Shown piece after piece: positions 41,137 through 59,410 of a stretch of DNA of 64,000 bases (within the stretch, counting starts at the first letter, position 1; each line of letters opens with the position of its first letter). Position numbers and translations under genes: made by a program. Location: the sequence record MZ475891.1; one strand, written 5' to 3'. The notes under the pieces were generated by a model that ran no database searches, had not been told where the DNA came from, and was given only the letters and a program-made list of their open reading frames with translations.

Positions 41137-41958
41137 ATGCCAGAAGCACGCAAACCTCGCCCAGCTGATCGTTTCGCTAAAGCCCGTGCAGAGAAAAACT
41201 CACCGGAGCGTCAAGATGCGGCAGCCCAGCGCACGTATAAAGACACTCCGCCTAAATCTGTTCAGGTGAAACTTGATGCTGTGGCAGCTTCTAAGAAGAA
41301 AGTTTCACGCGGCCCCAAGGCATCTCGTCCGCGTCAGTCGCCTGTTGTTGACGCAGCACCAAAGCCTCGCATTCGTGATGAGGAACGTGTGTACAATCTC
41401 GTACACATGATTCTCTCTGCGTGGAAAGCCGATGCAGAAAACGCGGCGGTAAGTGTGGGAATCATTAAAGTGTCTCGCCGTAAGATCGAGGGTGCGTTAC
41501 GCGATCTCAAGAATACGCGCTTCACTAAAATCCCAGGCTTAATCAATGACGTGCTTGTCTACAATGAACTGGTAGCTGAGTTCGGACAGTGGGTGTACGT
41601 CGAGCACGACAGTCCTGATTGGATTTTTGTGCGCCTGCCTGAAAACAGCACGCCTGTGATTCGCGCTGACATTAGTTACGCCAAGACGGGTGAAACTTCC
41701 ACGTCTGTTTCGACTTCTAGTGAAGTTCTGCTGAAAGATCTTAGCGAAGACGAAGAAGATGAGATCCCCGATAATGTCGAGTACGACGATGCGGACGAGA
41801 CTGACGAAGACGAAGCTGAGCCGTATGACTACAGCGCTTGGTCGCTGAGTGACCTGCAGGCTTATGCAAAGCGTTATGACTTCCTGCAGCCCGACACTGA
41901 GGGGTTCGATGATCGCGAGAAGTTGATAGCAGCCATCGAGCTGGGGGAACAGCACTAA
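41137..41958 (+). CDS. hypothetical protein: basic N-terminus, acidic linker, C-terminal HeH-like motif (273 aa)
   Basis: AAGGA RBS; SAWSLSDLQAYAKRY...DREKLIAAIE. Confidence 0.8.
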   Translation: MPEARKPRPADRFAKARAEKNSPERQDAAAQRTYKDTPPKSVQVKLDAVAASKKKVSRGPKASRPRQSPVVDAAPKPRIRDEERVYNLVHMILSAWKADAENAAVSVGIIKVSRRKIEGALRDLKNTRFTKIPGLINDVLVYNELVAEFGQWVYVEHDSPDWIFVRLPENSTPVIRADISYAKTGETSTSVSTSSEVLLKDLSEDEEDEIPDNVEYDDADETDEDEAEPYDYSAWSLSDLQAYAKRYDFLQPDTEGFDDREKLIAAIELGEQH

Positions 41959-41967
41959 GCACAAATA

Positions 41968-42012
41968 TGGACAAAATAGTGGTAGTATCTAAAGCATGAC
42001 CTGTGCTACACT
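41968..42012 (+). promoter_or_regulatory. phage promoter, upstream-box class
   Basis: TGGACAAAAT at 41968; CCTGTGC-TACACT with the -10 at 42007 (39 nt offset). Confidence 0.75.
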
Positions 42013-42015
42013 ATA

Positions 42016-42135
42016 GATCGAATGCCTTGTAGTTTTTTGACTGTGAGTTACTTTCCGGCTCACAGTCCTTTTTAAAGTGCTCTCACAAGAACGCTTTAAA
42101 AAGCACAGACTGCCTGCGCTTTTGATAGACAGCAT
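42016..42135 (+). ncRNA. putative ~120-nt small RNA (copy 2 of the structured element)
   Basis: ORF-free interval between two promoters; hairpins GACTGTGAG/CTCACAGTC (42039-42067) and CTTTTTAAAGTG/CGCTTTAAAAAG (42068-42103). Confidence 0.45.
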
Positions 42136-42140
42136 AAATC

Positions 42141-42184
42141 TGGACAAAATCATGGTTGTATCAGAATGCTGCCTGTCATACACT
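42141..42184 (+). promoter_or_regulatory. phage promoter, upstream-box class
   Basis: TGGACAAAAT at 42141; CCTGTCA-TACACT with the -10 at 42179 (38 nt offset); TTGTAT as -35. Confidence 0.75.
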
Positions 42185-42226
42185 TTAATGAGTCGAGCAA
42201 TAGTGCTCGCAACAAACTAAATCCCA

Positions 42227-42240
42227 ATACTGAGGAGTAT
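42227..42240 (+). promoter_or_regulatory. SD-in-tetraloop RBS hairpin
   Basis: ATACT-GAGG-AGTAT before the ATG at 42246. Confidence 0.6.
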
Positions 42241-42245
42241 TACAC

Positions 42246-43838
<1,593 letters not shown>

Positions 43839-43860
43839 GTAACCTGTAGTTCTGAATACA

Positions 43861-43880
43861 TGCGGCTCGAAAGGGCCGCA
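43861..43880 (+). terminator. GC hairpin with GAAA tetraloop
   Basis: TGCGGCTC-GAAA-GGGCCGCA, no U-tract. Confidence 0.5.
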
Positions 43881-43895
43881 CACTGACAACAAAGT

Positions 43896-43909
43896 TGATT
43901 GAGGAATCA
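43896..43909 (+). promoter_or_regulatory. SD-in-tetraloop RBS hairpin
   Basis: TGATT-GAGG-AATCA before the ATG at 43914. Confidence 0.55.
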
Positions 43910-43913
43910 CATT

Positions 43914-45176
43914 ATGTCAAACGCAAATAAAACTCTGCTTAACGCTCGTGTACGTCTGTCCACTGGCACAACTACTTTCATCAACAAGATTAACGCGAAC
44001 GGCTACGGCATCGATGCTAAGGGCCCACAGATTTCTGTGAAGCGTCTTGTTATTGCAGGCAAAATGCTCAAAGAGCTGGCTGAGCCGCTGCCGCAAGGTG
44101 AATACGTTGTGCTGAACGGCGTCACTGTGAAACTGAACAAGCGCCAGCAACGTGAGCTTGCAGAGAAAACGCTCGACACTAAAGCGCTGCTGCCTGATTT
44201 AAGCAAGCTGACCTACGTTGACCCGCAGACAGGCAAAGTCACTGATTCAAAAGTGAAGGCGCCTAAAGCTGGCGCGAAAGCAAGTCTGAAAGCAACGCGT
44301 GAGCACAACAAAGAGCCGAAGCGTAGTCGCAAACAGCACAAAGCTGAAACGAACGATCTCAAAGACAGTCTGGACATTATCGACGAACGCAAATCACCGA
44401 AAGCGTCTCTGATTGAACGTCTGGATGCAGCAATCGCCGAAGCGAAAACGAAAGCACGCCGTAAGCTGTTAGCCGAAACGTTCGACATGGACTGGGCTGA
44501 TATTAAAAAGCATGGCGGTGCAGGTATCGTTAAGCAGCATGGCCGCAAGAACGCCCAGAAGTTTATTGATCGTCAGACAGTGCAGGTCGATAGCACAACG
44601 TTCATCAAACAAATGCCAGCGCCGCTCAAGCGTCTTATTCAGGACACTGAGTTGCGTCTCAATCAAAAGCAGATTGAGCAAGTGCTTGGTGCGCTGGGGC
44701 TTGATACGCAATTCTACGCAGTCGCCGTGCAAGAGCTGCTGGGCAAACTCAAACTGTCCATAGGCGGCCGCGTGATCGAAGGCGAAGTTGTTCGAAAGGA
44801 GAACACGCCGAAGCCAAAAAGGTTCGTACACGCTGAGGCGCAATACGCAGATAAGAAAGAAGCGAAACGCCGCGTAAGCAAAATGAAATACGCGCTGCTG
44901 ATTCCGCCTACGAAAGGTCTGCCTGCGTTACGCATTCATCAGGCAGAGGCAAAGCAGTCACTCGCCGTTATGCTGCACCTGAAGCCTGGGAACATCAAGC
45001 GTGGTCTGCTTGCGTATGACAACAAAGGCCGTGAGTATATGTATGTCGCTTGCGATATGACGGGCCCTGTGTTCATCGATAAAGATAGCAACGAGCTGGC
45101 GTTCACGTATGCCAATCTGATCGATAACTTCAAACTCAAAGCGCAGCCTGTGTCTGAACTGGACGTGGCCGTATGA
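43914..45176 (+). CDS. Lys-rich protein, apparent paralog of the 42246 gene (420 aa)
   Basis: similar N-terminal beta domain and similar L.pG....Y...G....D domain. Confidence 0.8.
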   Translation: MSNANKTLLNARVRLSTGTTTFINKINANGYGIDAKGPQISVKRLVIAGKMLKELAEPLPQGEYVVLNGVTVKLNKRQQRELAEKTLDTKALLPDLSKLTYVDPQTGKVTDSKVKAPKAGAKASLKATREHNKEPKRSRKQHKAETNDLKDSLDIIDERKSPKASLIERLDAAIAEAKTKARRKLLAETFDMDWADIKKHGGAGIVKQHGRKNAQKFIDRQTVQVDSTTFIKQMPAPLKRLIQDTELRLNQKQIEQVLGALGLDTQFYAVAVQELLGKLKLSIGGRVIEGEVVRKENTPKPKRFVHAEAQYADKKEAKRRVSKMKYALLIPPTKGLPALRIHQAEAKQSLAVMLHLKPGNIKRGLLAYDNKGREYMYVACDMTGPVFIDKDSNELAFTYANLIDNFKLKAQPVSELDVAV

Positions 45177-45559
45177 GAACTGAAATCATCGTAGCGGGAG
45201 TTCTCTCTCAACTTTACACGCGGCTGATTACGGCCGCTATAATGAAAGCGCATGTGTATTACTCAGACCTTGCGCCGGTGGTGTTCGGTGTGCAGCTTAC
45301 CAAAGTCGGTAAGTCGCAGTATCAAGCGCTGTGGGATTTAGTAGCGCTGACGATGCAGATGGACCACGCACACGGCCGACCGCCTGTTGCTGCTCTGTAT
45401 GTGTCTCGCGCTAATGCATCAAAACGACCGCCGCAAGCATTCTTCGCTGAATACGAGCGGCTAACTGGTAAGCGACTCAATGACGACGACTGGGAAGAGT
45501 TAGTCGATGAAGTATGGGCAGCTTACTCTCCACCAGAAATCTGTCAGGAGCCGACATGA
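45173..45559 (+). CDS. hypothetical protein, possible winged-helix domain (128 aa)
   Basis: ATGA overlap; GRPPVAALYVSR...P.QAFF. Confidence 0.7.
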   Translation: MRTEIIVAGVLSQLYTRLITAAIMKAHVYYSDLAPVVFGVQLTKVGKSQYQALWDLVALTMQMDHAHGRPPVAALYVSRANASKRPPQAFFAEYERLTGKRLNDDDWEELVDEVWAAYSPPEICQEPT

Positions 45560-46014
45560 AGAAGTTGAAAGCCGTAAAGGTTAAAATTAGCCGCGGTGGT
45601 TATAAGCCTTCTTCTAAGGAAGAGGCAAAGAAGCTGGTGGCAGAGTTTCTGCTCGGTACCATCGGCATTAGCCCAACGCAAGTCAGTCAACAACTGCTGT
45701 TGAATATCACGAACTACAACTATCTGACCTCTGTTGCGTATTCTGGACGTTCTACAGATTACAGCCAAGCGGCAGCGCACAAAACTGTAAAAGAACTAAA
45801 TGAATTTTGTCGAAAGCATAAAATTCAACTGGGCTTGCTAATTATGCCCCACACGTCGGCGTCTGAATATGATGGTGACGTAATTGTTGCAATCCCGTGG
45901 GAGCATGTTAAGAACAATCCGCAAATCCAGTCTGCCGTTAATTCTCTGTTTGAATCGGTTGAAGCAGACGGCTACCCACAGTATGTGACTGATGCTAAAA
46001 CAGTAGAGGGATAA
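45556..46014 (+). CDS. hypothetical protein (152 aa)
   Basis: AGGAG RBS, ATGA overlap. Confidence 0.75.
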   Translation: MKKLKAVKVKISRGGYKPSSKEEAKKLVAEFLLGTIGISPTQVSQQLLLNITNYNYLTSVAYSGRSTDYSQAAAHKTVKELNEFCRKHKIQLGLLIMPHTSASEYDGDVIVAIPWEHVKNNPQIQSAVNSLFESVEADGYPQYVTDAKTVEG

Positions 46015-46015
46015 G

Positions 46016-47296
46016 ATGTTCTACGACTATGTATTCAACTTCGACGAGCGCCAGACGCTACTGTCGTTAGCGGAATCCAAGTATCTTCTTAAACGGGACA
46101 TTCCCGAGTATCTTAAAAAGTCCAAACACGCAATTGAGATTCGTCACACTGTGACCAATCGTGGACGCGAGCGCCGCTCAGGAACAATAACAACTCCTAT
46201 CGTGCCGCGTATTCACACCCGTGATGTTATGCGCTTGCTTGATGATATTCGTGACAACGCGACTTACAGCTCCTGCCAAAGTCTCGCTGAACTGTTTGAA
46301 TTGGGCTTGGGCGTTCCGCGCCAGAAAGATATTGCTACTTACCTTCATGCTTATTCGCGTGAGCACGACAAGAAAGGTATCGGTATCAAGTATATCCGCA
46401 AGCTGGTGGTTGATTATCATCGTAAGCACCGTCGTAGTATGGCGGGCAGTCGCTGGTTAATGCCTGCTGCTTACACGGCCAATCTGCTGAACATGCAGAA
46501 CTTCATTCATCTGAAAGAAGACGGCTACAAGGGTAAAGTCAAAACGCCAGACGGCATCCCTGTAGTCTTGATTTACCAGAGCACTGAATACGCGACTGGC
46601 GAGTTTACTCTGTGTGACGCATTCATGATTAGTCCGATGGGATATCCAATGCCGTTCGCTCAGATTGCGCTGCGTCCCGAGTTCAAGGCTGTGCCTAAAA
46701 CGTTTTGCTCCCAAGCTCTGCGTGGCAAAGGCATGTACTCAATGGTTCTCGGTATGATTTACTGGGAGAAAGGTGATTCAGTCGAATTGACACGCGAAGT
46801 CATGGAGATTGATGACAACCAGTATCTCACGTTGCTCGATGATGAACGTTATGCTGACCGCCGCTCTGATGAATATTCAGCGATGCTGGTCAAGCGTGAA
46901 GAGTTCCGTCGCAATCGTGACAAGTGGCAGTCAGTGATTGATAAGTACGGCCAGACAGTTCGAACCCTCAAGCCTGAGATTAGCGCTCGTCTTGATCGTG
47001 CTCGTCAGTTCTTCTACGACCGCTCCGAGTTCCTGAAAGAGTTCGAGTCTCAGGAGAAGCGTGAGAACACCCGCGCATCAAAACGTTTTGCTGTAGCGTC
47101 TGCGATGTTTGCTGCGATTGACTGTGGGACAATTGCTGATCGTCAGACCTACCTTGCAGTGAGCACAAAGATTGATAAAGTGCATGACATTCTCGGTAAG
47201 TGGGGATTCAACACTGTAAAATCTGTTAATGCTAGTTTGAAGAAGTCTCTTTTAACCTATGACGAATCAGGCGTATCTCGCGTCTGGTCACTATAA
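46016..47296 (+). CDS. hypothetical protein (426 aa)
   Basis: long ORF, tight packing. Confidence 0.8.
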   Translation: MFYDYVFNFDERQTLLSLAESKYLLKRDIPEYLKKSKHAIEIRHTVTNRGRERRSGTITTPIVPRIHTRDVMRLLDDIRDNATYSSCQSLAELFELGLGVPRQKDIATYLHAYSREHDKKGIGIKYIRKLVVDYHRKHRRSMAGSRWLMPAAYTANLLNMQNFIHLKEDGYKGKVKTPDGIPVVLIYQSTEYATGEFTLCDAFMISPMGYPMPFAQIALRPEFKAVPKTFCSQALRGKGMYSMVLGMIYWEKGDSVELTREVMEIDDNQYLTLLDDERYADRRSDEYSAMLVKREEFRRNRDKWQSVIDKYGQTVRTLKPEISARLDRARQFFYDRSEFLKEFESQEKRENTRASKRFAVASAMFAAIDCGTIADRQTYLAVSTKIDKVHDILGKWGFNTVKSVNASLKKSLLTYDESGVSRVWSL

Positions 47297-47299
47297 CCC

Positions 47300-47315: not shown

Positions 47316-47317
47316 AC

Positions 47318-50300
47318 ATGTCCGAGAACAATCAAAGCGGAGCTACTCGCTTCGGCACAGAAGTGCAGGCCGGCATCGCAGAAGCGCAACGCCGTGCTAA
47401 CTCTGCTGAGAGTGGCAGGCTGAACAAATGCACGATCATCGTGCTGACTTCGATTGACGCCAACCAGCGTTACTCTTATCTGTCCGCAGACGAACAACTG
47501 CGCGAAGAACTGGTGCGCGGTAAAGTAATCAACCGTCTGCCTGACCTGTTAGAGCGTGCTGGTGGTAATACCGCTGCTGACAATAACAGCGCGTTCCACG
47601 TCCTGCACCCAAACAACGGCGTGCCTACCTCGATCGATGCTCGCATCAAAGTGGGCGAAGGTAATGCGGTCATTCTGTCATATACTGTAAACAAAGCAGT
47701 GACAGAGATGCACGGTAGCTTATCGCTTGCTCTGTTTGCATCTGGCGCCGAAGACTTAAATGATCTGGCCGCTGATTTCGGTATTCACGCAATTGCGATT
47801 GTTGAAGAATCGAAAGCCGCTGAGTTCATCAAAGGACTTGAAGCTCAGGTGGAAGCGTTGAATATTGTAAATCTCACTAGCATTGATGATTCTAACGATT
47901 CGTTAGACCTGCCAGTGATTGACTTCGCTGCATTAGCGGGCAATCCTACAACAGTGCTTACGGGCGCTGTGCGTACCTTCATCATGCAATCAATCAGCGG
48001 CGAAGTCTTCGCTGCAATCCCTAATAACGGAGAACTGAACGTGAAAAACGATAACGTGGCTCAGCCTGCTGACCTGGAAGAAGACTTCGACAACAATGAT
48101 GAGATTGTTGATCAGAACGGCGGTGAAGGCGAAGTTACTGGCGAAGAGCTGCTGGGCTACAAAGCAGAAAATCTTTCGCTCGACCAAATGCGTAGTGCGC
48201 TTGAAGCGATCAACTACGACCTGTCTGAAATGACGGAAGAAGCAATCCGTGAAGCGTTCGAAACTGAACAGAACCTTTACCTGGGTGGCGGCGATGACGA
48301 ATCTTCCGAAGAAGAGGAAGATGAAGACGCCGCTGATGTTGACAGCGACGAAGAAGAAGAGGAAGAAGACGAGGAGTTCGATGCTCCTGCGTATCTGGCT
48401 CAAGCGCTCGCTGCTGAAAACTTTAGCCGTAGCGATCTGAAACTGCTGGTCAAGTCTCAAGACCTGAAAGTGATGAAGAACGACACTCCTGAAACTCTGG
48501 TGCAGAAGCTGCTGGACCTGGTGCAGGACGCATCGTCCGATGAAGTGTTCGAACTGATCACTGTGTTCGTTGAACTGCTGGACGAGCACGGCGTTGAATG
48601 TGACGCGCTGCGTGCTACCATCGCTGAGGACGAAAGCGATGAAGACGAAGAAGAGGACGGCGAAGACGAAGACGCCGATGAAGATGGCGACGACGAAGAA
48701 GAGGAAGATGAAGAGGAGTCTGATGAAGACGAATCTGAAACCGAATCTGATGACGAAACCGAAACGCTGTCTGTGGCTGACGTTACCGATCCTCTCGATT
48801 ACTTCCGCTTCAACGGTGGTGACCTGACTGCCGAGCAGCGTATTGCTGCTGTCGAATCGATGGGTACAAGCACTGTTGGTCTGAACATTGTTCAGGTCAT
48901 GAAAGCGTTCAACGAAATCCGCTCACAGTCTAACCTGATCGATATTGCCGCTGATGAAGCCGACTCTGCGCTGTACGATATGCTGACTGCTCTGCCGTAC
49001 GCAACGCTGCTGAGCTTCGCTCAAGAGATTGAGCTGGAAGTTGATGGCGAAGAGTCTGCCGAAGATCTCGTCACTCTGCTGATGGACGAATCTACTGCCG
49101 ACAGCGATACGCTGAAAGCGCTGGCGTATGTGTTCGAAACCTACGGTGGCCTGGGTGTTGAAGCAGATGATATCCTGCTGATGGACTGGCATGAAGCGCT
49201 GGCGCTGGTTATTCCTGTGTATGCATCGTCAGACGAAGTTGAGTCCGATGCAGAAGACGAAGACGAAGACGTTATCGCCGATGAAGATTCGTCTAACGCT
49301 AACCTGAAGTTCCTGAAATCTGTTGACGTCAACAACCCTGTCGGCCCGATGCTCGAAGTTGATATGGACCGCACTCTGGTTATCAACTACACCTTCACTG
49401 ACGGTAACACTTACCGCGATGTGCAAGATGAGCTGGCTGATATCGGTGGCGTTAACTACCGCTTCCCGTTCAATCTGGGCAAAGCAGGTAAAGCAAACAA
49501 GAGCAGTGCGCCTGGTAGCCTGATTGCTCCTGCTGAACATCTGATCGCAATGTTAGACCGCGCCGGTACTACTCGCTTCTTAGCTGACCCGAACACCTTC
49601 GATGTTGGTGTGTGGGCAGAATCTCTGGAGCGTATGCTGAACGCAGAAATCGCTAACAACCTGTATGCTGGTCGCATTGAAGACGGCGCTGACCCGCAGC
49701 AAGCTGGCATCGTAGTCGGTGACTTCATCGATGAAGACGAGCAAGCAGAAGTTGCTGACCTCGGTCTGCTGGATGAAGATGAGCTGGAAGCGTACACTGG
49801 TGACCATCTGCCGATTGCAAGCCTGTACAATGCGCAAGCCCGCGTTCGTCCAGTCAACGTCGATAGCTCTTACGTTGCACTGAGCACTGTAGTGCTGAAC
49901 GTTGCAGTCCCTGGCTTCTGGTGTGACTCTGATGTTGGTCGTCTGGTGCAAGCGTGTGTTAATCGCGTAATCAGCCTGGCGGAAAGCGTTGAAGGCATCA
50001 AAGTGTATGCAGGCTTCACTCTGGAATCTGCTGCGCTGCTGAACAACGGTCGCCTGTACGAAGTTGTTGGTGCGCTGCGTGAGATGGACGGTGTGCAGTC
50101 TTACTCTGCCGCTGACGCTGCTAACTTCTCAGAAGCGGAAGACATTATCGAAGTAGCGTCTTCTATCGATGATCGTGACCTGCCGTTCACTGTACTGGCA
50201 AGCGGCCTGTCTGGCGCAACGTTTGAAAACGGCGGTGACCTGACCGTGCTGGTTCCGTGCTCTGTCTTCGACGAAGAGGAAGATGAGTCCGAAGAGGACG

Positions 50301-50374: not shown

Positions 50375-51196
50375 ATGTCAGAACAAGTTGACCACGCAAC
50401 TAACATCATTAAGATGGTTAGTGACCGTGATGCAAAGATTAGCGAGCTGTCCGTTACGGCAAACGAGCTGCAAGGTCAGGTGAATGACTATGCTGCCGAA
50501 CTCGCCGCATCTGCTGTGCGTGAAACTGCATTGCGTTTGAAGCTACGTTCTCAAGAGCGCCAGACGAATACTGATTTAGTTCGTCTGGAAACTCGCACGA
50601 AAGAGCTGGTGGATATTTCAAACACTCAGATGGCCGAAAGCAACGAGCTTAAAGCACGCGTTGAAGAAATGAACGCTAAGCTGGCGCAAGTTGACCCGAT
50701 GCCGTTCGTGCTGCATCTGGTTGCTGTGCAAGCTGCATCTGTGTTCTCGTACATGGTGCAGTCGTTTGCTCATGCTCATGTTAACCAGCGTACCAACGAT
50801 ACCACACGCACACTCAGTGCTCTGATGGTAGGCGAAACAGCGCGGCGTTATCAGTCTTTCGAAAAGACCATCGCTCGTTACTGCAACTCGATTGGCGCTG
50901 AACGTCCGAAAGCAAATGATGTGCGTAACGCTTTCCCTGACTTCATGCGTAATGAAGCTGATTTATTCTGTAAAGACCCGAAGTACAGTCACGATTGCAT
51001 GGCATTAGCTGCTATGCTTAATCTGCCTCGTACATCGTGGATGTATCGAAAGTCTCTGGACGCCGTAAACCACTTCGCGTGGATTGCAGCTTTCGAAGGC
51101 AGTCCTCAAGAGTTTGAGTCAGAATCAGATTACAACGAATTATACGTTAACTCGCTTATCGATATTGCAAGCGCGTTAATCGGGCAAAACTTTTAA
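50375..51196 (+). CDS. hypothetical protein with N-terminal coiled coil (273 aa)
   Basis: AGGA RBS, heptad-like N-terminal half. Confidence 0.8.
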   Translation: MSEQVDHATNIIKMVSDRDAKISELSVTANELQGQVNDYAAELAASAVRETALRLKLRSQERQTNTDLVRLETRTKELVDISNTQMAESNELKARVEEMNAKLAQVDPMPFVLHLVAVQAASVFSYMVQSFAHAHVNQRTNDTTRTLSALMVGETARRYQSFEKTIARYCNSIGAERPKANDVRNAFPDFMRNEADLFCKDPKYSHDCMALAAMLNLPRTSWMYRKSLDAVNHFAWIAAFEGSPQEFESESDYNELYVNSLIDIASALIGQNF

Positions 51197-51241
51197 TCTG
51201 TAAAACTTCCCTGTGATTTATTCTGTAAACACTAATTGAAG
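51195..51241 (+). promoter_or_regulatory. tandem TCTGTAAA boxes, candidate phage-specific promoter
   Basis: AATCTGTAAAA at 51195 and TCTGTAAACACTAATTGAAG at 51222. Confidence 0.5.
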
Positions 51242-51291: not shown

Positions 51292-51861
51292 ATGGCAAAA
51301 GCTACTAAGTCAACTAACCTGGTTCCTACCCTGGTTTCTCGCATCGCTAAAAAGTCTGGCTCTATCGGTACTTCGAAAGCAAAAGCAACTGACCTGCCGC
51401 ATGACATTCTGATCGAATCTCAGCACGTTGTCGAAATCATCGGTTATATCACTGACCGTTCTGCGAACCACGTTACTCTGCGTCACAAAAAAGGACACGG
51501 TTCTTCTTCTCAGATCGTTTCAACCTTCGGCCCTGGTCAACTGCTGACCGTTCTGGGTGAAGCTGGTTCACACGGTTCTGTGCGTGCGCTGATTACTGCT
51601 CCGGTCTGCGAACTGAAAGGCTTCACCATTAAGTATGACGGCGATACCATCATCGCTACTTCTATCGAAACTGGCGAAGTGATTCACGTTAACACCCAGC
51701 TGGCCGGTCACACCGTTCGCGCTACTGTGAACGAAACTGCCGCCGCTAAGAAATACGGCACGCCTGCTCCAGGCAAAGGCAAGAAAGATGCTAAGCCTGC
51801 TAAAGCAGACAAAGCAGCGAAAGGCGGTAAGAAAAAGAAAGGTAGCGACGAAGACTTTTAA
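51292..51861 (+). CDS. beta-rich protein with Lys/Ala-rich tail (189 aa)
   Basis: GGAG RBS; tail PAKADKAAKGGKKKKGSDEDF. Confidence 0.85.
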   Translation: MAKATKSTNLVPTLVSRIAKKSGSIGTSKAKATDLPHDILIESQHVVEIIGYITDRSANHVTLRHKKGHGSSSQIVSTFGPGQLLTVLGEAGSHGSVRALITAPVCELKGFTIKYDGDTIIATSIETGEVIHVNTQLAGHTVRATVNETAAAKKYGTPAPGKGKKDAKPAKADKAAKGGKKKKGSDEDF

Positions 51862-51874: not shown

Positions 51875-51954
51875 AATCTGTAAAAACTGATTATGCAGAG
51901 CAACAAAAATAAAGTTGCTCTGCCGTTAAACGAATCTGTAAACATTAATTGAAG
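51875..51954 (+). promoter_or_regulatory. tandem TCTGTAAA boxes, candidate phage-specific promoter
   Basis: AATCTGTAAAA at 51875 and TCTGTAAACATTAATTGAAG at 51935. Confidence 0.5.
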
Positions 51955-51990: not shown

Positions 51991-52785
51991 ATGGCTAAAT
52001 CTGCTAAAGTAACCGTAACCGTCGCACAGAAAGTTCTGGCTCAGATGCTGGGTGTTGTTGTAGCGAACGCAAGCGAGAAAGAACTCGTTGCGATTCTGTC
52101 TGACCTGGGCCTGACTGTTGCTGCGAAAGGTAAAGGTGCTAAAGCTGAGAAAGCTGCGAAGGGCGGCAAGAAAGCTAAAGCCGCTACCGTTGCTCAGATC
52201 GTTAAGGCCGTTGAAGAAGAGGAAGCTATCTCCCTCGACGGCGTGAGTGAAGATGACCTGCGTGCAGCGGTCGTCAAAGCTAAGCTGGCTAAGGCCAACA
52301 AAGCTAAAGCGCTGGACGAAGAGGAGTTGACTGAACTCCTGACCGACGCAATGGGTGCCGAGTCTGATGAAGACGAGGAAGAGGACGAAGAAGAAGAGGA
52401 CGAAGACGAGGACGAAGACGACTCGGACGACGAAGACGAAGATGAAGACGACGAGGACTCAGATGATGAAGATGAGGACGAAGACGACGAAGATTCGGAC
52501 GACGAAGACGAGGACGAAGATGATGAGGAGGAAGACGAAGACGAGGATGAAGATGAGGACGAAGATGAAGATCTCGACCTTGACGGCCTCGACGAAGACG
52601 AACTCCGCGCCCTCGTGATCGACAACAAGCTGGCCACTAAGGCCAAAGCTAAAAAGATGGACGAAGACGAACTTCGTGAACTGTGTGAATCCCACTTCGG
52701 CGGCGACGATGAAGACGAAGACGAAGATGAGGACGAAGACGATGAAGACTTCGACGACGAAGACGAAGACGAAGACGACGAATAA
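51991..52785 (+). CDS. protein with two HeH-like modules separated by a ~70-residue D/E tract (264 aa)
   Basis: AGGA RBS; LDGVSEDDLRAAV... and LDGLDEDELRALV... repeats. Confidence 0.85.
   Translation: MAKSAKVTVTVAQKVLAQMLGVVVANASEKELVAILSDLGLTVAAKGKGAKAEKAAKGGKKAKAATVAQIVKAVEEEEAISLDGVSEDDLRAAVVKAKLAKANKAKALDEEELTELLTDAMGAESDEDEEEDEEEEDEDEDEDDSDDEDEDEDDEDSDDEDEDEDDEDSDDEDEDEDDEEEDEDEDEDEDEDEDLDLDGLDEDELRALVIDNKLATKAKAKKMDEDELRELCESHFGGDDEDEDEDEDEDDEDFDDEDEDEDDE
52360..52580 (+). repeat. coding low-complexity D/E tract with three DSDDEDEDEDDE units
   Basis: 36-nt units differing at synonymous positions. Confidence 0.8.
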
Positions 52786-52835: not shown

Positions 52836-52998
52836 AGAAATATTCGAAAAATAGTTCGAATTATTTCGCAAAAAGTTTGAAAAATTCCTGTCGTTGTTTA
52901 TTGCACATAGTAATATTCGACTACAGGAATTAAACCTGAAAAATTTTACTTTTATCCAACGCGACGAGTCGCACAAAATAAATTCACGGAGTTATGCC

Positions 52999-53511
52999 AT
53001 GACTAAGAAAATCATTTCCGGCCTGAACAAAAACCTGAAAGCTATCGCTAAATCAGAAGCTGCCCTGGCCAAAACTGTTGCTGCTACCAACAAAGAGATC
53101 GAAAACCTGGGTTCACAGCGTGCTGGTATCGAAGCGCAGATCGCTGAACTGTCTGGCGTTGCTGCTCCTGCCAAAGCTGATAAAAAAGCTAAAGGCGCGA
53201 AAGCTGAAAAAGCGGCCAAGCCTGCTAAAGCTGAAAAAGCAGCTAAAGCCGGTAAGAAAGAAAAAGCTGCAAAAGCTGAAAAGCCAGCCAAAGCTGATAA
53301 AAAAGCTAAAGGCGCCAAAGCTGAAAAAGCTGCTAAGCCTGCTAAAGCTGAAAAAGCTGGCAAGAAAGAAAAAGCTGCTACCAAGCCTGCTAAAGCTGAT
53401 AAAAAAGCGAAAGGCGCCAAGGCCGACAAAGCTGCTAAAGGCGGTAAAGCTGACAAAGCCGGTAAGAAAAAGAAAGCGCAGTCTGATGACTTCGAATTCG
53501 AAATGGAATAA
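52999..53511 (+). CDS. histone H1-like Lys/Ala repeat protein with N-terminal coiled coil (170 aa)
   Basis: GGAG RBS; three PAKADKKAKGAKA(E/D)KAAK repeats; ends DDFEFEME. Confidence 0.85.
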   Translation: MTKKIISGLNKNLKAIAKSEAALAKTVAATNKEIENLGSQRAGIEAQIAELSGVAAPAKADKKAKGAKAEKAAKPAKAEKAAKAGKKEKAAKAEKPAKADKKAKGAKAEKAAKPAKAEKAGKKEKAATKPAKADKKAKGAKADKAAKGGKADKAGKKKKAQSDDFEFEME

Positions 53512-53543
53512 GCAAGCGGTCGCATAGCGCGATAACTTGATCG

Positions 53544-53575: not shown

Positions 53576-53609
53576 GTCGTATCTAACTCATTTTCGAGGC
53601 TCTTTAAAA

Positions 53610-54095
53610 ATGTCCAAACAAGAAGTATTCAACCGTCTTGATGACCTTCATGCAAAAGAGCGTGAGCGTATCAAACAAGCCAAGCAAGGCCCCTCCTATT
53701 TCGAACTGACGAACCTGCGTATTGAAGCAGCCGCTCGTCTCGCTCGTGCCCTACAAACTCTCAAAGCCGCAAACGTTGTTGGTAACGTTGAAGGTGTCTC
53801 TCTGCAGGAAGATGCGCTTGAAGTCGCTCAAGCCTACTGGTCTGCTATCTTAGAAGGCTTAACCCCTGTAGTAGTTGAAGGCTCGCCTATGCGCAAGCTG
53901 CTTGATGGTATGCCTGCATGTATCGAAGCGTTCCGTGTTATCGTAATGGAAAGCGCTATGCGTGAACGTCTAGTCGTTCAATGCAATGCGATTGCAGATG
54001 ACATTAAGGGTTTCCCGCAACTGACTGGTCATGTTCTGCCTACTATTCAACACACCTGCGAAGAGGGATGCAACTGTGGCTCAATCACTAAGTGA
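53610..54095 (+). CDS. hypothetical protein (161 aa)
   Basis: GAGG RBS. Confidence 0.75.
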   Translation: MSKQEVFNRLDDLHAKERERIKQAKQGPSYFELTNLRIEAAARLARALQTLKAANVVGNVEGVSLQEDALEVAQAYWSAILEGLTPVVVEGSPMRKLLDGMPACIEAFRVIVMESAMRERLVVQCNAIADDIKGFPQLTGHVLPTIQHTCEEGCNCGSITK

Positions 54096-54846
54096 GAAGA
54101 TTAACCGTTACTTCAATCTGATGGAGGACATCCGTGCTGAGATGTTCCGCGTGATTGATGTATCTGACCGTTACTTCGGTATCGTTAGTTTCAACACTAA
54201 CATGCAGGCACTGCAAACCACACTGGTGAGCAAATCCACCCTGATGGAAGTTAAGCTGCTTGAGGGTATCACTGGTGCGGAGCTGATTGCGTTTGGCAAT
54301 ATGGTTCACACTGTAGAGCAATGGGTTGCTGGTGGCATGAAAGGCGCTTTCCCTATCGAGCAGACCAAAGACGTGTATGCCAAATATCGCGCTGCTACCT
54401 CAGATGAACCACAGGCACAAAGTGAACCTAAGCCTGCTAATACCCCGCAGCCTGATGCTGATGAGTTAGACAGCCAGGAACTGGACAATATCAAAGTTCA
54501 ACTTCTGTCCTTCGATGACTCTGAACTGATCGACCATGCCGCTCAGTTTAAACTTGGGACGCGTACACGCCTGCGCAGAATGGGCCGAGATGATTTGTTG
54601 GACATGTTGTTTGATCATCATGGTATCTACGCAGAAAACGACCAGCGCCGCAATGAAAGTGTTGCAGACTGGTTAGAGCGTATACCTCTTGATGATGCTC
54701 TCCGCGAAGTCGACCGCATAGATGATAGCAGTGTACTCGATCACGTTGCGGACGCTATGAGCGTTATGTCGGGTGTCAATGACGCTGTGACGCGAGCGCG
54801 TATTAAGCAGGCTCTGAAAGAGCTACACACTAAGCCCGCGCAGTAA
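54076..54846 (+). CDS. hypothetical protein with HeH-like motif
   Basis: GTG start with GAGGG RBS (start uncertain); LLSFDDSELIDHAAQFKL...MGRDDLLDML. Confidence 0.75.
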   Translation: MAQSLSEKINRYFNLMEDIRAEMFRVIDVSDRYFGIVSFNTNMQALQTTLVSKSTLMEVKLLEGITGAELIAFGNMVHTVEQWVAGGMKGAFPIEQTKDVYAKYRAATSDEPQAQSEPKPANTPQPDADELDSQELDNIKVQLLSFDDSELIDHAAQFKLGTRTRLRRMGRDDLLDMLFDHHGIYAENDQRRNESVADWLERIPLDDALREVDRIDDSSVLDHVADAMSVMSGVNDAVTRARIKQALKELHTKPAQ

Positions 54847-54870
54847 GTCAAATTTGTCTCTACACTAAGC

Positions 54871-54915
54871 TGGACAGATCGTGGGTAGCGTCTGACGCTC
54901 TGCCTATGTTATAAT
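54871..54915 (+). promoter_or_regulatory. phage promoter, upstream-box class, driving the topoisomerase genes
   Basis: TGGACAGATC at 54871; CCTATGT-TATAAT with the -10 at 54910 (39 nt offset). Confidence 0.7.
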
Positions 54916-54986
54916 ACATATAGGACAAGTAGTGTCTGAATATGCTAATATCGAGTGGTCAACGCTACTCATTAGGAGAAACGAAA

Positions 54987-57014
54987 ATGGCGAAAACGCC
55001 TAAAGCCGCAAAAGTCAAAAAGGGTGACGGCTCCCAAGATGGCTTCACTATCGCAGAAGGCCTCGACGGGATTCGACTAAACCCTGGCATGTACATGGGT
55101 CAACAGGGTGCGGACATGGCGTATCGCGCTGTGAAAGAACCTGTGGACAATGACTACGATGAATACATCGCAGGTCGTAACAAGTTGATCGAAGTGGTCA
55201 TTGATTACGATAGCGACCTGAACATCGTAGCTGACCAAGCAGGCGGCATTCCTACCGACTTTAAGAAACTGAAAGACGGTACGAAAGAAACGATCATGAC
55301 CGCAGCGTTTAGCCGTGTTCATGCGGGTGGTAAATTCAACGATCAGGCATATAAGACCTCTGCTGGTACACACGGTGTAGGTGTAGCTGCACTGAACGCA
55401 ATCTCCAGTCAGTTGCGTGTGTGGTCAATGTACAAAGGCAGTTGCGCTTATCAGATGTGGCAGTGTGGCGAAGTCAAGTCGGGCAAAGACCCTAAGAAAG
55501 TCAAGACCATCGACAAAGACGTTATGAGCCTGCTGCGCGATAAGAAGCACAGCAAGTACGGTACTGTGGTAGCGTGGACGCTTGACCAGACTGTTGTGTC
55601 TGCTGATGCACAGCGTGGTAAGAAGCTGCCTAAGAACTATCGACACGCTGCTCCTAATCCAGCTCAGCTTGGTGAGTGGCTGCGTAACATGTCAATGCTC
55701 AACCCAGGCCTTGAGATTCGCCTGACGTTGATCAAAAAGGGCAAGCGCAAAGAGTTCACTTTCATCAACAAGAAAGACCTGAACTATGTTGTGAAGACTA
55801 TGTGTGAAGAACGCGAGCTGGGAACTGTAGGAAAGCCGTTCATCTTCAAGTCTGACAATATCACGGCTGCGCTTGCTTGGACAGATCATGCAGACACTGA
55901 CAACTTCCTCAGTTTCGTTAACACCAGCCCAACAGTTGATGGCGGGTGGCACGTAGTAGGTTTCCGTGATGCGCTGTTTGATGCAATCAAGCCGTTCATG
56001 AAAGAACCGAAAGGTAAGGGCAAGAAGAAGAAGCAGGGCTTCAAACAAGAAGACTTGTTGATTGGCCTGACCGGTATGTTCGACTGGCGTATGCACGGTG
56101 CTCAATACACCTCGCAGGTAAAAGACAAGCTGGCCAGCCGCGTCGAGAAAGACGTGTACGAAATGCTGAAAGATGCTTTCGTGAAATACTTCAAGGACAA
56201 TAAGAAGGTCGCTACGACAATCATCAAGCGTGCCGAAGCGATGAACAAGGGACGTGAAGAACTCAGCGCCGTCGTTAAGTCTATGGCTGATACGAAGAAG
56301 AAGCTGAAAGGTAACGCACTGCCTGCCGACCTCGTTGTCGCAAACAAGTGTAAGCCGCATGAGCGTGAGCTTGTCGTGGTGGAAGGGGATTCTGCTGGTG
56401 GTACTGCAAAAGATGCGCGTAACCCTGACTATCAGGAAGTTATGAAAGCTGGTGGTAAGCCGCTGAACGGTCTGAAAGCAAGTCTGGCTGACGTACTCAA
56501 GCACAAAGAAGTGCAGGGTATGCTGGTGAGTATCGGTGCTGACCTGAAATCGCTTGACCCGAAAGCAGAAGCACCAAAGTTGAGCACGAAGAATCTGCGT
56601 ATAGGCAACATCCTGTTTCTTGCTGATGCTGACCCAGATGGCTTCCACATCAACGTGCTGTTCCTCGGCGTTATCTATCGATTGCTGCCTGACTTGATGA
56701 AAGAAGGCCGTGTGTGGATTGTTGACGCACCGCTGTACAACGTTATCCATCAGGGCAAACACTACGGTGGTATGACGTTTGAAGAATGCCGTGCTAAAGC
56801 GCCGTCTGCTGTAAAAGACAAAGACATTGTACGCGCTAAAGGTTGGGGTGAAGTTGAGCCTGACGTGCTTGAAGCAATCGCGTTCAATCCGAAAACTCGT
56901 CGTCTCATTCGTGTTAACCCGTTTGAGAACGTTGAGCAGGAACGTTTCTTTAGAGGTGTAGTTGCAGAAGATGCAGTTCACCGTCGTCGCTTGCTCGGTC
57001 TGGAGGCAGCATGA
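54987..57014 (+). CDS. gyrB: type IIA DNA topoisomerase, ATPase/TOPRIM (GyrB/ParE-like) subunit
   Basis: IRLNPGMYMG, EPVDNDYDE, HAGGKF, SAGTHGVGVAALNA, VEGDSAGG, DADPDGFHI, RAKGWGEV; AGGAG RBS. Confidence 0.93.
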   Translation: MAKTPKAAKVKKGDGSQDGFTIAEGLDGIRLNPGMYMGQQGADMAYRAVKEPVDNDYDEYIAGRNKLIEVVIDYDSDLNIVADQAGGIPTDFKKLKDGTKETIMTAAFSRVHAGGKFNDQAYKTSAGTHGVGVAALNAISSQLRVWSMYKGSCAYQMWQCGEVKSGKDPKKVKTIDKDVMSLLRDKKHSKYGTVVAWTLDQTVVSADAQRGKKLPKNYRHAAPNPAQLGEWLRNMSMLNPGLEIRLTLIKKGKRKEFTFINKKDLNYVVKTMCEERELGTVGKPFIFKSDNITAALAWTDHADTDNFLSFVNTSPTVDGGWHVVGFRDALFDAIKPFMKEPKGKGKKKKQGFKQEDLLIGLTGMFDWRMHGAQYTSQVKDKLASRVEKDVYEMLKDAFVKYFKDNKKVATTIIKRAEAMNKGREELSAVVKSMADTKKKLKGNALPADLVVANKCKPHERELVVVEGDSAGGTAKDARNPDYQEVMKAGGKPLNGLKASLADVLKHKEVQGMLVSIGADLKSLDPKAEAPKLSTKNLRIGNILFLADADPDGFHINVLFLGVIYRLLPDLMKEGRVWIVDAPLYNVIHQGKHYGGMTFEECRAKAPSAVKDKDIVRAKGWGEVEPDVLEAIAFNPKTRRLIRVNPFENVEQERFFRGVVAEDAVHRRRLLGLEAA

Positions 57015-57268
57015 TGTTCAACAACGCAAAATGGTCTGACGGTACGATGCTACGTTTTCTCGATATGCCTGACGTCCAGCATCCGCCAATGACCGAAGAA
57101 CAACACAAGCAGTATGAGGCGTTAATGGCAAAAGGTCGTGAGTTGTCGAAAAACGTTACTGTATCTGCATTCAGTGTAGTTGACGGTAAGCCTGCTAAGC
57201 GTGTGCAGGTGCAGATGAGTCGCACAACTCTCGATAAGATTAATGCGATGCACTCAGGAGATCAGTAA
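57011..57268 (+). CDS. hypothetical protein (85 aa)
   Basis: GGAGG RBS, ATGA overlap with gyrB. Confidence 0.7.
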   Translation: MMFNNAKWSDGTMLRFLDMPDVQHPPMTEEQHKQYEALMAKGRELSKNVTVSAFSVVDGKPAKRVQVQMSRTTLDKINAMHSGDQ

Positions 57269-57507
57269 TGCTCAAGGGTAAGAAAGTCAATCAAGCACCA
57301 TCGTGTGTTGCACGAATCTTCCCTGTAGTTGCAGGTACTGAGGATTGGCCAATCCCGCTGTTCGATATGCCTGACTTTCATATCAGCATGAGCGAGGAGC
57401 AGAAAGCTCGTCTTGATTCTGCTATGGCTAACGTCAAGCAACACATTAAAGATAGCCCGTACAACGGGAAGCTATTCTTTACTATGCCTGGAGATGCCCA
57501 TGAATAA
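57268..57507 (+). CDS. hypothetical protein (79 aa)
   Basis: AGGAG RBS, TAATG coupling. Confidence 0.7.
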   Translation: MLKGKKVNQAPSCVARIFPVVAGTEDWPIPLFDMPDFHISMSEEQKARLDSAMANVKQHIKDSPYNGKLFFTMPGDAHE

Positions 57508-57739
57508 GTTCCAGCGTCACATTAAATCTCTGCCCGAATCTGGTGCCAGCTTTCAGCAAGCAGCACCGCTAGGCCGTACTGTCGTAACACGTTCAGCGGG
57601 TATCACACGCGGTGTAACTCGCATGGCTTATCCTCAGTTGCAGCAAATCCCACGCAACTTATCGGGCCTGAATGGTGTGAACGTTCGTCGCATCGATATT
57701 AACTTGGATGAAAACGTTTTCATCCAGACGCATTCGTAA
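57500..57739 (+). CDS. hypothetical protein (79 aa)
   Basis: GGAG RBS, overlaps the previous stop. Confidence 0.65.
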   Translation: MNKFQRHIKSLPESGASFQQAAPLGRTVVTRSAGITRGVTRMAYPQLQQIPRNLSGLNGVNVRRIDINLDENVFIQTHS

Positions 57740-57748
57740 GAGGCTGGC

Positions 57749-59410
57749 ATGCCAATCAAACCTAAGAAAGTCAAAGCGGCCAAAGCAGTTAAGCCTGCTA
57801 AAGCGACCGCTGTTGCAAAGCCACTTAAAGTCAAAGTGAAATCGAAAGCCGTTTCTGTCGATGACATTAAGACAAAGAAAAAGTCGAAAGAAGTCGCCGC
57901 AGTGCAGACAGGCGCATCGCTCTATCCGATGATTGGTCAAGACGAATCTAACATTCGTGACCAGGGCCTCGCAGATTACACACGCCACGCGCTGGGTGTG
58001 TACGGTTCTTACGTTGTTGAAGACCGAGCTATCGCTGACTATCGTGATGGCCTCAAGCCTGTGCACCGTGCGCTGTTGTGGTCGTTGTCTGATCTTAACT
58101 TGCGTCCTGGTGGTGCGTTCAAGAAATCTGCGCGTACTGTTGGTGACACGATCGGTAAGTATCACCCGCACGGCGATGCAGCCTGTTACGGCGCAATGGT
58201 AACGATTGCAAACACAGTGCCACCGGCTGTTGCTGGTTCTGGTAACTGGGGTAGCCCTGTTGACCCTGCTGCTGCTATGCGTTATACCGAAGCGAAGATG
58301 AGTAAGTTCACGGGTACGTTCTTGCTCGACTCTGATTACTTAGAAGTTGTACCTCGTGTGCCTAACTTCTCAAACGATCTTGAGCTACCGCTTTACTTGC
58401 CTGCTCTGCTGCCGTACATGTTGTTCAATGGCTCTGTGCCTGCACCAGCGTACGGCGTCAAGTGTGGTAACCCGTCATTCAGCTTCGCGTCCGTATCTAA
58501 AGTCGTGTGTGAGATGCTGAGCGGCAAAGAGTACACAGCGAAGACGCTTGCGAAGACGCTTGAGATTCGCCATGAGTTCGGCTGTATCGACGTTAGCTCT
58601 GACGAAGATATGTACCAGCTTATCTCAACAGGCCGTGGCAAAGTCACATACGAACCGCTGATTAAGATCGATGAGAAGTCGAAGACCATCACGATTCAAA
58701 CGTATGTGCCTGCTGGCATGTCCAATACTGCGGGTATCACTAAGAAGCTGGAGAAGATTTCTGAGTGGCCAGGCATTAGCTCCGCAGCAAACGCCAGTGG
58801 CAAGAAGAACAAGAACGCAGGTCCTTACGGTGCAGCGTTTGAGTTCCGCGTACGTGGTAGTGAAGACCAGTTGTACGAACTCGCCTCACGCATTCAGAAG
58901 GAAGTGACTGCTGGCGTCAACTACAATCTGGGCGTTACGATTCGTCGCGCCGATAAGCCGAACACCTTCAAGTATCTGAACTATCTGGATTACTTCAAGG
59001 CGTGGGTAGCGTATCGTATCAAACTCGAAACAGCCATGCTGAACAACAAGCTGGCCAAAGCAGAGAAAGCCCTGCACTTGCAGCAAGTTTATCTGTGGGC
59101 AGTTGACAACATGAAGCAACTGCTGGCTGCCTTGCCTAAAGTGTTAGTCGCAGAAGACCCAGACAAAGCGCTGGCCAAAGCGTGCAAGATTCCAGTTGAA
59201 GATGCGAAGATCATCCTCGACCGTCAAGTGCGTAAACTCGCCAAGCTGGAACGTGGTGGTCTGATTGCCAAAATCAAAGACATTAAGGAAGAGATTGCTG
59301 GTTATAAGGCAGGCTTGAAAGCGCCAGGCAAACATGCAGCACAGAGCACGGCTGCGAAAGTCAAAGCGTACATCAAATCACCTGATGATAAGCTGCCCGT
59401 AAGTCTTTGA
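57749..59410 (+). CDS. gyrA: type IIA DNA topoisomerase, breakage-reunion (GyrA/ParC-like) subunit without a C-terminal beta-pinwheel
   Basis: RAIADYRDGLKPVHR, KKSARTVGDTIGKYHPHGD, GNWGS, AAMRYTEAKM (catalytic Tyr); only 553 aa. Confidence 0.93.
   Translation: MPIKPKKVKAAKAVKPAKATAVAKPLKVKVKSKAVSVDDIKTKKKSKEVAAVQTGASLYPMIGQDESNIRDQGLADYTRHALGVYGSYVVEDRAIADYRDGLKPVHRALLWSLSDLNLRPGGAFKKSARTVGDTIGKYHPHGDAACYGAMVTIANTVPPAVAGSGNWGSPVDPAAAMRYTEAKMSKFTGTFLLDSDYLEVVPRVPNFSNDLELPLYLPALLPYMLFNGSVPAPAYGVKCGNPSFSFASVSKVVCEMLSGKEYTAKTLAKTLEIRHEFGCIDVSSDEDMYQLISTGRGKVTYEPLIKIDEKSKTITIQTYVPAGMSNTAGITKKLEKISEWPGISSAANASGKKNKNAGPYGAAFEFRVRGSEDQLYELASRIQKEVTAGVNYNLGVTIRRADKPNTFKYLNYLDYFKAWVAYRIKLETAMLNNKLAKAEKALHLQQVYLWAVDNMKQLLAALPKVLVAEDPDKALAKACKIPVEDAKIILDRQVRKLAKLERGGLIAKIKDIKEEIAGYKAGLKAPGKHAAQSTAAKVKAYIKSPDDKLPVSL

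Follow-up and report, generated by a model that had tools for sequence, protein, structure and literature searches.

What do the strongly charged proteins encoded toward the end of a jumbo phage genome do? The window analyzed here, a stretch of 64,000 nucleotides, is the final 64 kb (right-hand end) of the 264.7-kb genome of the Erwinia jumbo phage pEa_SNUABM_13 (MZ475891.1), and the block of genes at its positions 41137–59410 corresponds to 241851–260124 of that genome with 100% identity. An initial annotation had described this block as a candidate module of histone-like polycations, poly-acidic partners, and topoisomerase II that compacts or compartmentalizes phage DNA. We know of no means by which jumbo phages outside the chimallin group organize or protect a ~260-kb genome during replication. 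Our analysis points, with a probability that we put at roughly 0.4, to a DNA-associated polycation/polyanion protein system that would act in the infected cell during the replication and packaging phase.

Charge and short motifs are conserved across relatives

The block genes are named here by a letter and their length in amino acids (A273 to M271). An open reading frame (ORF) and composition check found all those initially listed on the plus strand with the compositions ascribed to them. The polyanions are B530 (42246–43838; net charge −64; phrog_33433), G1001 (47318–50323; −185), which is folded at both ends, contains several D/E tracts, and has an acidic tail at its C terminus, and J264 (51991–52785; −97), in which 47% of the residues are D/E and a D/E tract spans ~52345–52572. 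The C-terminal end of J264, ...EDFDDEDEDEDDE (F at 52744–52758), is invariant across orthologues and stands within otherwise drifting acidic sequence. On the basic side are C420 (43914–45176; +29), the folded F426 (46016–47296; +14), which belongs to a very small family, I189 (51292–51861; +11), with K-rich disordered ends around an all-beta core and the tail KKKKGSDEDF at 51844–51858, and K170 (52999–53511; +27).

K170 combines an N-terminal coiled coil with K/A/P/E repeats at 53200–53477 (28% K and 29% A in the protein) and, as aligned with its relatives, an acidic-aromatic tip, DDFEFEME, at 53485–53499. Tandem Repeats Finder resolved the repeats into a 102-bp unit present 1.9 times and made of 9- and 27-bp sub-repeats; it also confirmed the GAA/GAC acidic tracts of the block as true repeats. 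The description of K170 as H1-like holds for its composition and repeats but not for its sequence, which matched no Pfam family at E ≤ 0.1, no NCBIfam family, and no PDB sequence, those of H1, Hc1, and AlgP included. A word-indexed search of 5.8 billion sequences with K170 residues 1–60 returned nothing, this query being too short for significance.

Short motifs are common to these proteins. Among the ~90 window proteins, PAKADK and KKKK..SD(D/E)(D/F) occur in I189 and K170 only, and DDFEF occurs in B530 and K170 only, which confirms the initial observation that such motifs recur within the cluster. Within the window, four of the five acidic-tract genes lie inside 11 genes (p ~0.018), and six of the eight genes with an absolute net charge of at least 25 lie inside 18 genes (p ~0.014), so that the clustering of extreme-charge genes is modestly non-random. 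The evolutionary conservation of charge and motifs is the stronger evidence.

The closest relatives, at 97–98% identity, are pEa_SNUABM_7, 14, 21, 25, 34, 45, and 46; more distant ones are Alexandra, AD1, Y3, Yoloswag, pEa_SNUABM_5, the Dickeya JA phages, and one Yersinia phage. These relatives fall in the Lu11/PaBG group of "hairy" myoviruses (PMC7412058, PMC6143709). Conservation across related jumbo phages had been proposed as a check on the module, and we found the whole block to be syntenic in Alexandra, AD1, Y3, Yoloswag, pEa_SNUABM_5, and JA11, that is, together with the source, in seven phages of five genera. Across these seven phages, in which the protein identity of G1001 falls to 32–55%, net charge stays at −174 to −193 for G1001, −90 to −105 for J264, +27 to +31 for C420, and +26 to +30 for K170. 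B530 ranges from −56 to −78 and I189 from +11 to +16 across relatives.

The same is seen within single proteins. The basic disordered segment of B530 has a mean pairwise identity of 30% and a length of 39–57 residues, yet its charge remains at +10 to +14 (standard deviation 1.2); both acidic segments of B530 vary in length and are strongly negative throughout its homologues. In an alignment of 20 homologues, Asp-482, Phe-483, Phe-485, and Asp-487 of B530 are near-invariant inside drifting D/E tracts, and the end of K170, (D/E)DF(D/E)F(D/E)ME, is conserved in relatives. Steady charge in drifting disordered sequence, together with fixed Phe residues, indicates that the block is under selection for charge plus a short docking-type peptide.

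As far as the searches reach, the protein families of the block are small and confined. An exhaustive search of 1.84 billion proteins yielded 14 representatives of F426, none with a Pfam domain; F426 and G1001 match an identical set of 57 phage records; and the 20 loci found in IMG/VR all belong to the block's own clade. We found no literature on histone-like or condensate proteins in jumbo phages that treats this clade or these genes.

A three-gene core in distant relatives

The order of the block is also kept in a 251-kb contig (L012) with a B-like protein of just 30% identity. The charges in this contig are −103 (B-like), +20 (F-like), −128 (G-like), +12 (I-like), −49 (J-like), and +22 (K-like); the J-like protein ends in W and the K-like protein in DEDFDFE. 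Two small genes follow the K-like gene, and then topoisomerase II.

Beyond this contig, the structural model of I189 was compared with predicted viral structures (BFVD), where it matched PaBG and two further entries (E 1e-12 to 1e-13) and, less closely, phage Motura (E 1e-3). By tblastn, we located I-like genes in the PaBG and Lu11 genomes. Downstream of the I-like gene, both genomes encode first a hyper-acidic protein of 150–159 residues (67% D/E; net −93 or −99) and then a coiled-coil K/A-rich protein (+25 or +31) with Phe in its acidic tail. The I profile scores 67 (PaBG), 53 (Lu11), and 36 bits in deep relatives, and the K profile scores 44–62 bits with high compositional bias; the J-like genes of Lu11 and PaBG are assigned by position and design only. 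Including the contig, Lu11, and PaBG, the net charge of K170-like proteins ranges from +22 to +31. The profiles of B530, F426, and G1001 are weak or without match in Lu11 and PaBG.

The neighbors of this trio in Lu11 and PaBG are polymerase I, a sigma factor, SSB, and RecA, with a putative polyphosphate kinase in Lu11, and a topoisomerase subunit gene lies ~10 kb away in both genomes. On this gene order, we regard I-J-K (a basic beta-domain protein, a hyper-acidic protein, and an H1-like protein in fixed order) as the ancient core of the block, as judged from profile matches and composition, and B, C, F, G, and H as its elaboration in the enterobacterial lineage. Topoisomerase II is a neighbor within a replication neighborhood and not a constant partner of the trio; its inclusion in the module, as initially proposed, was thus not upheld. 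That the genes form one module, co-inherited and with charges and acidic-aromatic motifs under selection, was in contrast supported by the seven phages, the contig, Lu11, and PaBG.

The setting is likewise that of DNA metabolism. According to the annotation of pEa_SNUABM_7 (97% identical and better annotated), the charged-protein region lies on the plus strand amid SSB, a UvsX-like recombinase, an endonuclease, and topoisomerase II, ~100 kb from the structural module, which occupies ~46–135 kb on the minus strand. The placement of the module in DNA-metabolism territory, far from structural genes, is common to pEa_SNUABM_7, Lu11, and PaBG.

The polyphosphate kinase gene of Lu11 (Lu11_0155; L034 7736–8848) lies four genes upstream of the trio. 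The H1-like protein AlgP associates with polyphosphate granules (PMC9239181), and by this analogy, together with the position of the kinase gene, polyphosphate is a conceivable ligand of the trio. Composition has also misled annotation of these proteins: the K170 orthologue of pEa_SNUABM_5 (L006 16707–17213) is called a "putative valyl-tRNA synthase", and the J-like protein of PaBG (L035 12688–13140) is noted as similar to a eukaryotic ribosome assembly factor.

Domains and shared modules

In the AlphaFold2 (AF2) model of I189, an all-beta core (residues ~35–155; predicted local distance difference test score (pLDDT) ~90) lies between disordered K-rich ends. About half of the I189 family (alignment A1) has an acidic tip ending in Phe, and the rest has a plain K-rich end; this patchy distribution suggests repeated gain or loss. 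The AF2 model of B530 is composite, with a beta domain (residues 1–78), a basic disordered segment (79–134), an alpha/beta domain (135–317), an acidic segment (318–362), a helix-plus-beta domain (363–460), and a second acidic segment (461–487) that ends in DDFEF (43686–43700), followed by a HeH-like module (43719–43832). The terminal module is predicted as three short helices (498–507, 513–517, and 521–529; pLDDT 85–94).

This 38-residue module, predicted as two main helices around a K-rich loop, is present in every orthologue once in B530 and twice in J264 (20–34 bits in a first profile pass); with a profile built from the B530 copy, those of J264 map to 52234–52344 and 52576–52689. Among 22 modules, Pfam matches were to LEM (five), SAP (three), and Ish1 (one), all sub-threshold with a best E of ~1e-3, and it is plausible that the module is of the SAP/LEM DNA-binding type. 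A predicted helix-loop-helix module of weak SAP/LEM/Ish1 likeness in two block proteins counts in support of the DNA-associated interpretation initially given. Foldseek with the whole B530 model returned no SAP, LEM, or HeH match. G1001 gave no match to the B530-module profile, and the HeH modules picked out in it by eye were rejected, as neither the profile nor Pfam supported them; helix-loop-helix segments seen by eye in the acidic-tract proteins at 12153–12413, 28963–30183, and 37537–38928 likewise lack support from the module profile and Pfam. In M271, residues 163–193 form a weak HeH-like segment (6.3 bits).

Two further similarities link block proteins. C420 had been called a Lys-rich paralog of B530; the relationship was confirmed for the N-terminal ~150–200 residues (BLASTP E 8e-5; hhalign 92.6%) and did not extend to the remainder. 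The tails of I189 and K170 are alike (hhalign 73%). We rejected a G1001–J264 homology (hhalign 94%), since that similarity is compositional and driven by acidic tracts.

Putative promoter motifs

Two promoter-like motifs accompany the block. The first, P2, reads TCTGTAAA(N)TAATTGAA and is co-oriented with the genes at every copy (2892, 13134, 23879, 28081, 51197–51241, 51877–51954, and 59414). It occurs as a tandem pair (TCTGTAAA...TAATTGAA) at 51197–51241, about 69–94 nt before I189, and again at 51877–51954, about 55–113 nt before J264; tandem pairs 52–114 nt upstream of these two genes are kept in all seven relatives examined. The distant contig has two P2 copies before its I-like gene and one before its J-like gene, and in Lu11 two copies ahead of the J-like gene bear the label "putative middle/late promoter" in the GenBank record. 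From these annotated motifs in tandem, we infer strong middle-phase expression of I and J.

The second motif, P1, consists of a CTGGACA(A/G)A box (AAATCTGGACA(A/G)A) located ~30 nt upstream of an extended −10-like TGnTATAAT. One copy (CTGGACAGA ... TGnTATAAT) lies at 54870–54915, before the topoisomerase B gene, and a motif scan found further copies at 30184, 39695, 40884–40928, 42140–42189, and 59448–59491. All are intergenic and on the plus strand, and P1 precedes A273, B530, the topoisomerase B gene, and the gene after topoisomerase A. In pEa_SNUABM_7, P1 is nearly confined to 231–262 kb (the last 35 kb). P1 may define a class of promoters that carry an activator box or a UP-type box.

On either side of A273 stands one of two similar hairpins (GACTGT...ACAGTC, then CTTTTT), at 40986–41013 and 42039–42067, each just 3′ of a P1-type site. 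They are terminator-like, but because they lie between a promoter and a gene, attenuation or RNA processing is suggested.

How the charged proteins may act

In the system that we favor, the polycations K170, I189, and C420 would bind and bridge nucleic acid, K170 as a coiled-coil dimerizer with an H1-like tail and I189 as a beta domain with K-rich tails. The polyanions J264, B530, and G1001 would serve as counter-polymers built into the system, or as chaperones, so that the polycations stay soluble and exchangeable, and the SAP/LEM-like modules of J264 and B530 would tether them to polycation-bound DNA. The acidic-aromatic tips ((D/E)DF(D/E)F, EDFDD, and SDEDF) may be docking peptides for one common partner. 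Candidate partners are the small, putatively beta-barrel domains found in B530, C420, and I189, as well as any replication or topoisomerase protein whose surface is basic.

Several lines of evidence argue for this proposal: synteny in five genera and in a contig of such low identity, net charges that stay constant as the disordered sequence diverges, and near-invariant Phe residues in drifting D/E tracts; the order, charges, and acidic-aromatic tips of I-J-K kept in Lu11 and PaBG; the module shared by B530 and J264, whose family matches are all sub-threshold; DNA-metabolism neighbors in every arrangement (in the present block SSB, UvsX, and topoisomerase II, and in Lu11 and PaBG a sigma factor together with polymerase I, SSB, and RecA); the tandem "middle/late" motifs before I and J; and the virion analysis of PaBG considered below.

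Other results weigh against it. Apart from the topoisomerases, none of the cluster proteins has a named family in Pfam, PHROGs, or NCBIfam, where matches were to PHROGs of unknown function only, and PDB sequence searches with F426, G1001, K170, and the HeH-module profile gave no match. Foldseek found no significant PDB fold for the models of I189 (best E 0.05) or B530 (best E 0.23), both with low template modeling (TM) scores. Tudor, Agenet, PWWP, and KOW barrels rank first among the non-significant matches of B530, and those of I189 include Agenet entries as well, which hints at SH3-like barrels in these two models. The HeH likeness stays below Pfam cut-offs, with a best SAP score of 18.8 against 23.9 and an Ish1 score of 25.1 bits against 26.6 at the C terminus of A273. 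Synteny within a collinear phage clade is weak evidence for functional coupling. The ligand need not be DNA, as among the H1-like K/A tails of bacteria that of AlgP binds polyphosphate (PMC9239181) and that of PhaF binds RNA (PMC12818456).

Finally, the charge totals are unequal, +81 against −346. The acids must therefore also meet cations, host basic proteins, or nothing specific, and a simple balanced pairwise coacervate does not follow.

An unlikely but consequential extension of the DNA-associated system is that I-J-K, with B, C, F, and G in the Erwinia/Dickeya lineage, constitutes a self-contained phage "chromatin", a protein-rich DNA phase. Here, an H1-like bridging polycation, a beta-domain polycation, and DNA-tethered polyanions would gather replicating DNA in a condensate that concentrates replication and topoisomerase enzymes and excludes host nucleases. 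If this were true, a jumbo phage lineage outside the chimallin group would possess an alternative to the chimallin nucleus that needs neither membrane nor shell. The block offers a concrete, testable candidate, with conserved orphan proteins that look to be strongly expressed, extreme charges that are held, shared docking-type peptides, and DNA-metabolism neighbors. Confirmed DNA association would make it the first instance of a phage that encodes an H1-like protein paired with a polyanion, and a compact natural case of selection on charge rather than sequence.

Alternative explanations

The alternative that survives best, although we consider it improbable, is that I189 and K170 are internal head proteins that travel with the DNA in the capsid, the acidic proteins being assembly chaperones, core or scaffold components, or themselves ejected. 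Phage T4 provides a precedent, with basic internal proteins packaged alongside an acidic core. The "middle/late" annotation of the motif before I and J fits such a role, and MAK-type N termini and tandem promoters suggest abundance. The location of the genes speaks against it, however, since in three genome arrangements they lie amid replication and recombination genes and not in the head module, and P2 was not found ahead of the genes for the major head, sheath, and tube proteins in pEa_SNUABM_7. In the particle analysis of PaBG, 14 gene products were identified from Coomassie bands by tryptic MALDI, and none of gp123–131 was among them (PMC7412058), although this method is insensitive and would miss K-rich and D/E-only proteins. 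The GenBank records of Y3 and Lu11 carry no mass spectrometry flags and are silent on particle content. Should the proteins prove to be packaged, they would form a new class of internal head proteins, and with either outcome seven or more orphan families gain context.

Two other explanations appear less probable still. The block could serve host take-over or anti-defense, with poly-acidic DNA-mimic decoys soaking up host nucleoid or DNA-targeting defense proteins and the basic proteins compacting or silencing host DNA. This would account for the large negative excess without a matching phage polycation; D/E tracts of 75–100 residues have a DNA-like charge density, and a sigma-70-like P1 promoter stands ahead of B530 to H273. 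T7 Ocr and T4 Arn are examples of acidic DNA mimics, but the known mimics are folded, whereas the tracts of the block are predicted to be disordered. Moreover, J264, the most acidic and best conserved protein, has a middle/late-type motif, which is late for counter-defense at DNA entry, and no family match of any kind was found among the libraries scanned, which did not include the anti-defense library of PADLOC.

Of similar standing is a role as replisome or topoisomerase accessories: I189 and K170 would bind DNA while their tips recruit polymerase, recombinase, or topoisomerase, as single-strand-binding proteins do, and the large acidic proteins would be electrostatic tethers for the K-rich tail of topoisomerase A. 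The architecture agrees with this idea (a basic body predicted to bind DNA, joined by a linker to an acidic tip with a terminal Phe), as do the conserved ~60-residue K-rich extension of topoisomerase A and the neighboring SSB, RecA or UvsX, and polymerase genes. Yet the core of I189 is not recognizably an OB fold, having no OB-fold match in the PDB (Foldseek) and no Pfam SSB match; its tip is missing from about half of the family; known tethers carry far less charge than −97 to −185; and adjacency to topoisomerase is not universal.

Least probable is that no system exists and that independent, fast-evolving low-complexity genes are held together by genome collinearity, which is reported for the clade overall (PMC7412058, PMC6143709) and sits well with in-window clustering statistics of only p ~0.01–0.02, but which does not explain why the order, charges, tips, and tandem promoters of the trio persist in Lu11 and PaBG amid different surrounding genes or why identical short motifs are common to different block proteins. 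A role of F426/G1001 as the source of the "hair" fibers was rejected, as the hairy phages Lu11 and CBB (PMC6143709) give no F426/G1001 match; Lu11 does carry the I-J-K trio.

Comparison with known systems

K170 resembles Hc1/Hc2, AlgP, and the C-terminal domain of PhaF in its K/A/P-rich short repeats, high positive charge, and predicted disorder. Unlike these proteins, none of whose sequence models it matches, K170 also carries a conserved coiled coil at the N terminus and an acidic-aromatic tip at the C terminus, and its gene always adjoins one for a hyper-acidic protein.

Eukaryotic chromatin provides polyanion/polycation pairs in prothymosin-α with H1 and in nucleoplasmin and other acidic histone chaperones. 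As in the prothymosin-α/H1 pair, the block encodes long D/E tracts beside H1-like polycations, both predicted to be disordered; in contrast to that pair and to nucleoplasmin, it shows no homology to them, and the binding of its proteins to one another is putative. The phage acids also differ from eukaryotic chaperones in carrying SAP/LEM-like modules and in greatly outweighing the bases in charge. A polycation with a polyanionic partner on DNA is thus known from eukaryotic chromatin, whereas a phage version with these architectures is not. The 38-residue module of B530 and J264 is like SAP, LEM, HeH, and Ish1 modules in that its only Pfam matches, all sub-threshold, are to these families.

Acidic C-terminal tails ending in an aromatic residue are found in Escherichia coli SSB and T7 gp2.5. 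The block proteins share with these a (predicted) basic nucleic acid-binding body, a flexible linker, and a short acidic tip with Phe; they differ in that the I189 core lacks an OB-fold match and in that tips also occur inside or at the end of hyper-acidic proteins.

As a proposed device for organizing or protecting DNA in a large phage, the block can be compared with the chimallin nucleus, the internal proteins of T4, and the inner body of phiKZ, from which it differs in that its genes lie outside the head module. The initial statement that the window holds no chimallin or tubulin gene agrees with the annotation of pEa_SNUABM_7, in which neither chimallin nor PhuZ tubulin appears among the RefSeq product names of the homologous 43 kb, the part of that genome scanned. 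Pfam and PHROGs scans of 20 proteins, a part of those in the window, revealed no homologue of chimallin, tubulin, or inner-body proteins.

Topoisomerase II and accessory genes

Both subunits of topoisomerase II are present, as initially annotated (Pfam, PHROGs), and between them the two genes encode the domains that define a type II topoisomerase (T4-like, two main subunits), namely a GyrB-type ATPase with Toprim and a GyrA-type breakage-reunion domain. The large, GyrB-like subunit (54942–57014, plus strand) matches DNA_gyraseB (2.8e-27), Toprim (1.2e-8), and DNA_gyraseB_C in Pfam, and phrog_543. The A-like subunit (57749–59410, plus strand) matches DNA_topoisoIV (5.7e-58) from residue 93 and phrog_551 from residue 65. 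K/A-rich N-terminal tails had been ascribed to both. Subunit A does have such an extension, of ~60 residues and conserved in the seven phages, whereas the long tail of subunit B was not sustained: all six relatives start (MAK...) 15 codons downstream of the listed ORF start, so that translation probably begins at the 16th codon, 54987, which leaves a tail of only ~12 residues. Three small ORFs (85, 79, and 81 residues; 57011–57748) separate the two genes, a variable insertion spot that holds from none (AD1 and JA11) to three small genes, depending on the relative.

In A273 (41137–41958, plus strand), a basic N terminus is followed by a folded middle part and an acidic tract, and an Ish1/HeH-like motif (~41830–41934) lies at the C terminus. 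Homologues of A273 were found in Alexandra and AD1 only (58% identity), with differing C termini, and we therefore treat it as a lineage-specific accessory gene rather than the full member of the module that it had been taken for. The remaining genes of the block are also on the plus strand. D128 and E166 (45173–46014) are two small conserved genes to which no function is assigned; the true start of E166 is probably 45556, since its PHROG match begins at residue 15. H273 (50375–51196) has an N-terminal coiled coil followed by a helical domain, with weak coiled-coil family matches only. L161 and M271 (53610–54846) are both variable between relatives, and L161 is helical with a Cys-rich C terminus.

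Downstream, in the region 61032–62367, a weak HNH-endonuclease-like ORF (18.6 bits, below cut-off) overlaps the start of a 287-residue gene, which is called "DNA topoisomerase (4 subunit A)" in the annotation of relatives and is without any Pfam match here. Two long minus-strand ORFs, at 52992–53525 (177 residues) and 55692–56981 (429 residues), are antisense to K170 and to the topoisomerase B gene. Biased composition most likely accounts for them, as it is the plus-strand readings that are conserved.

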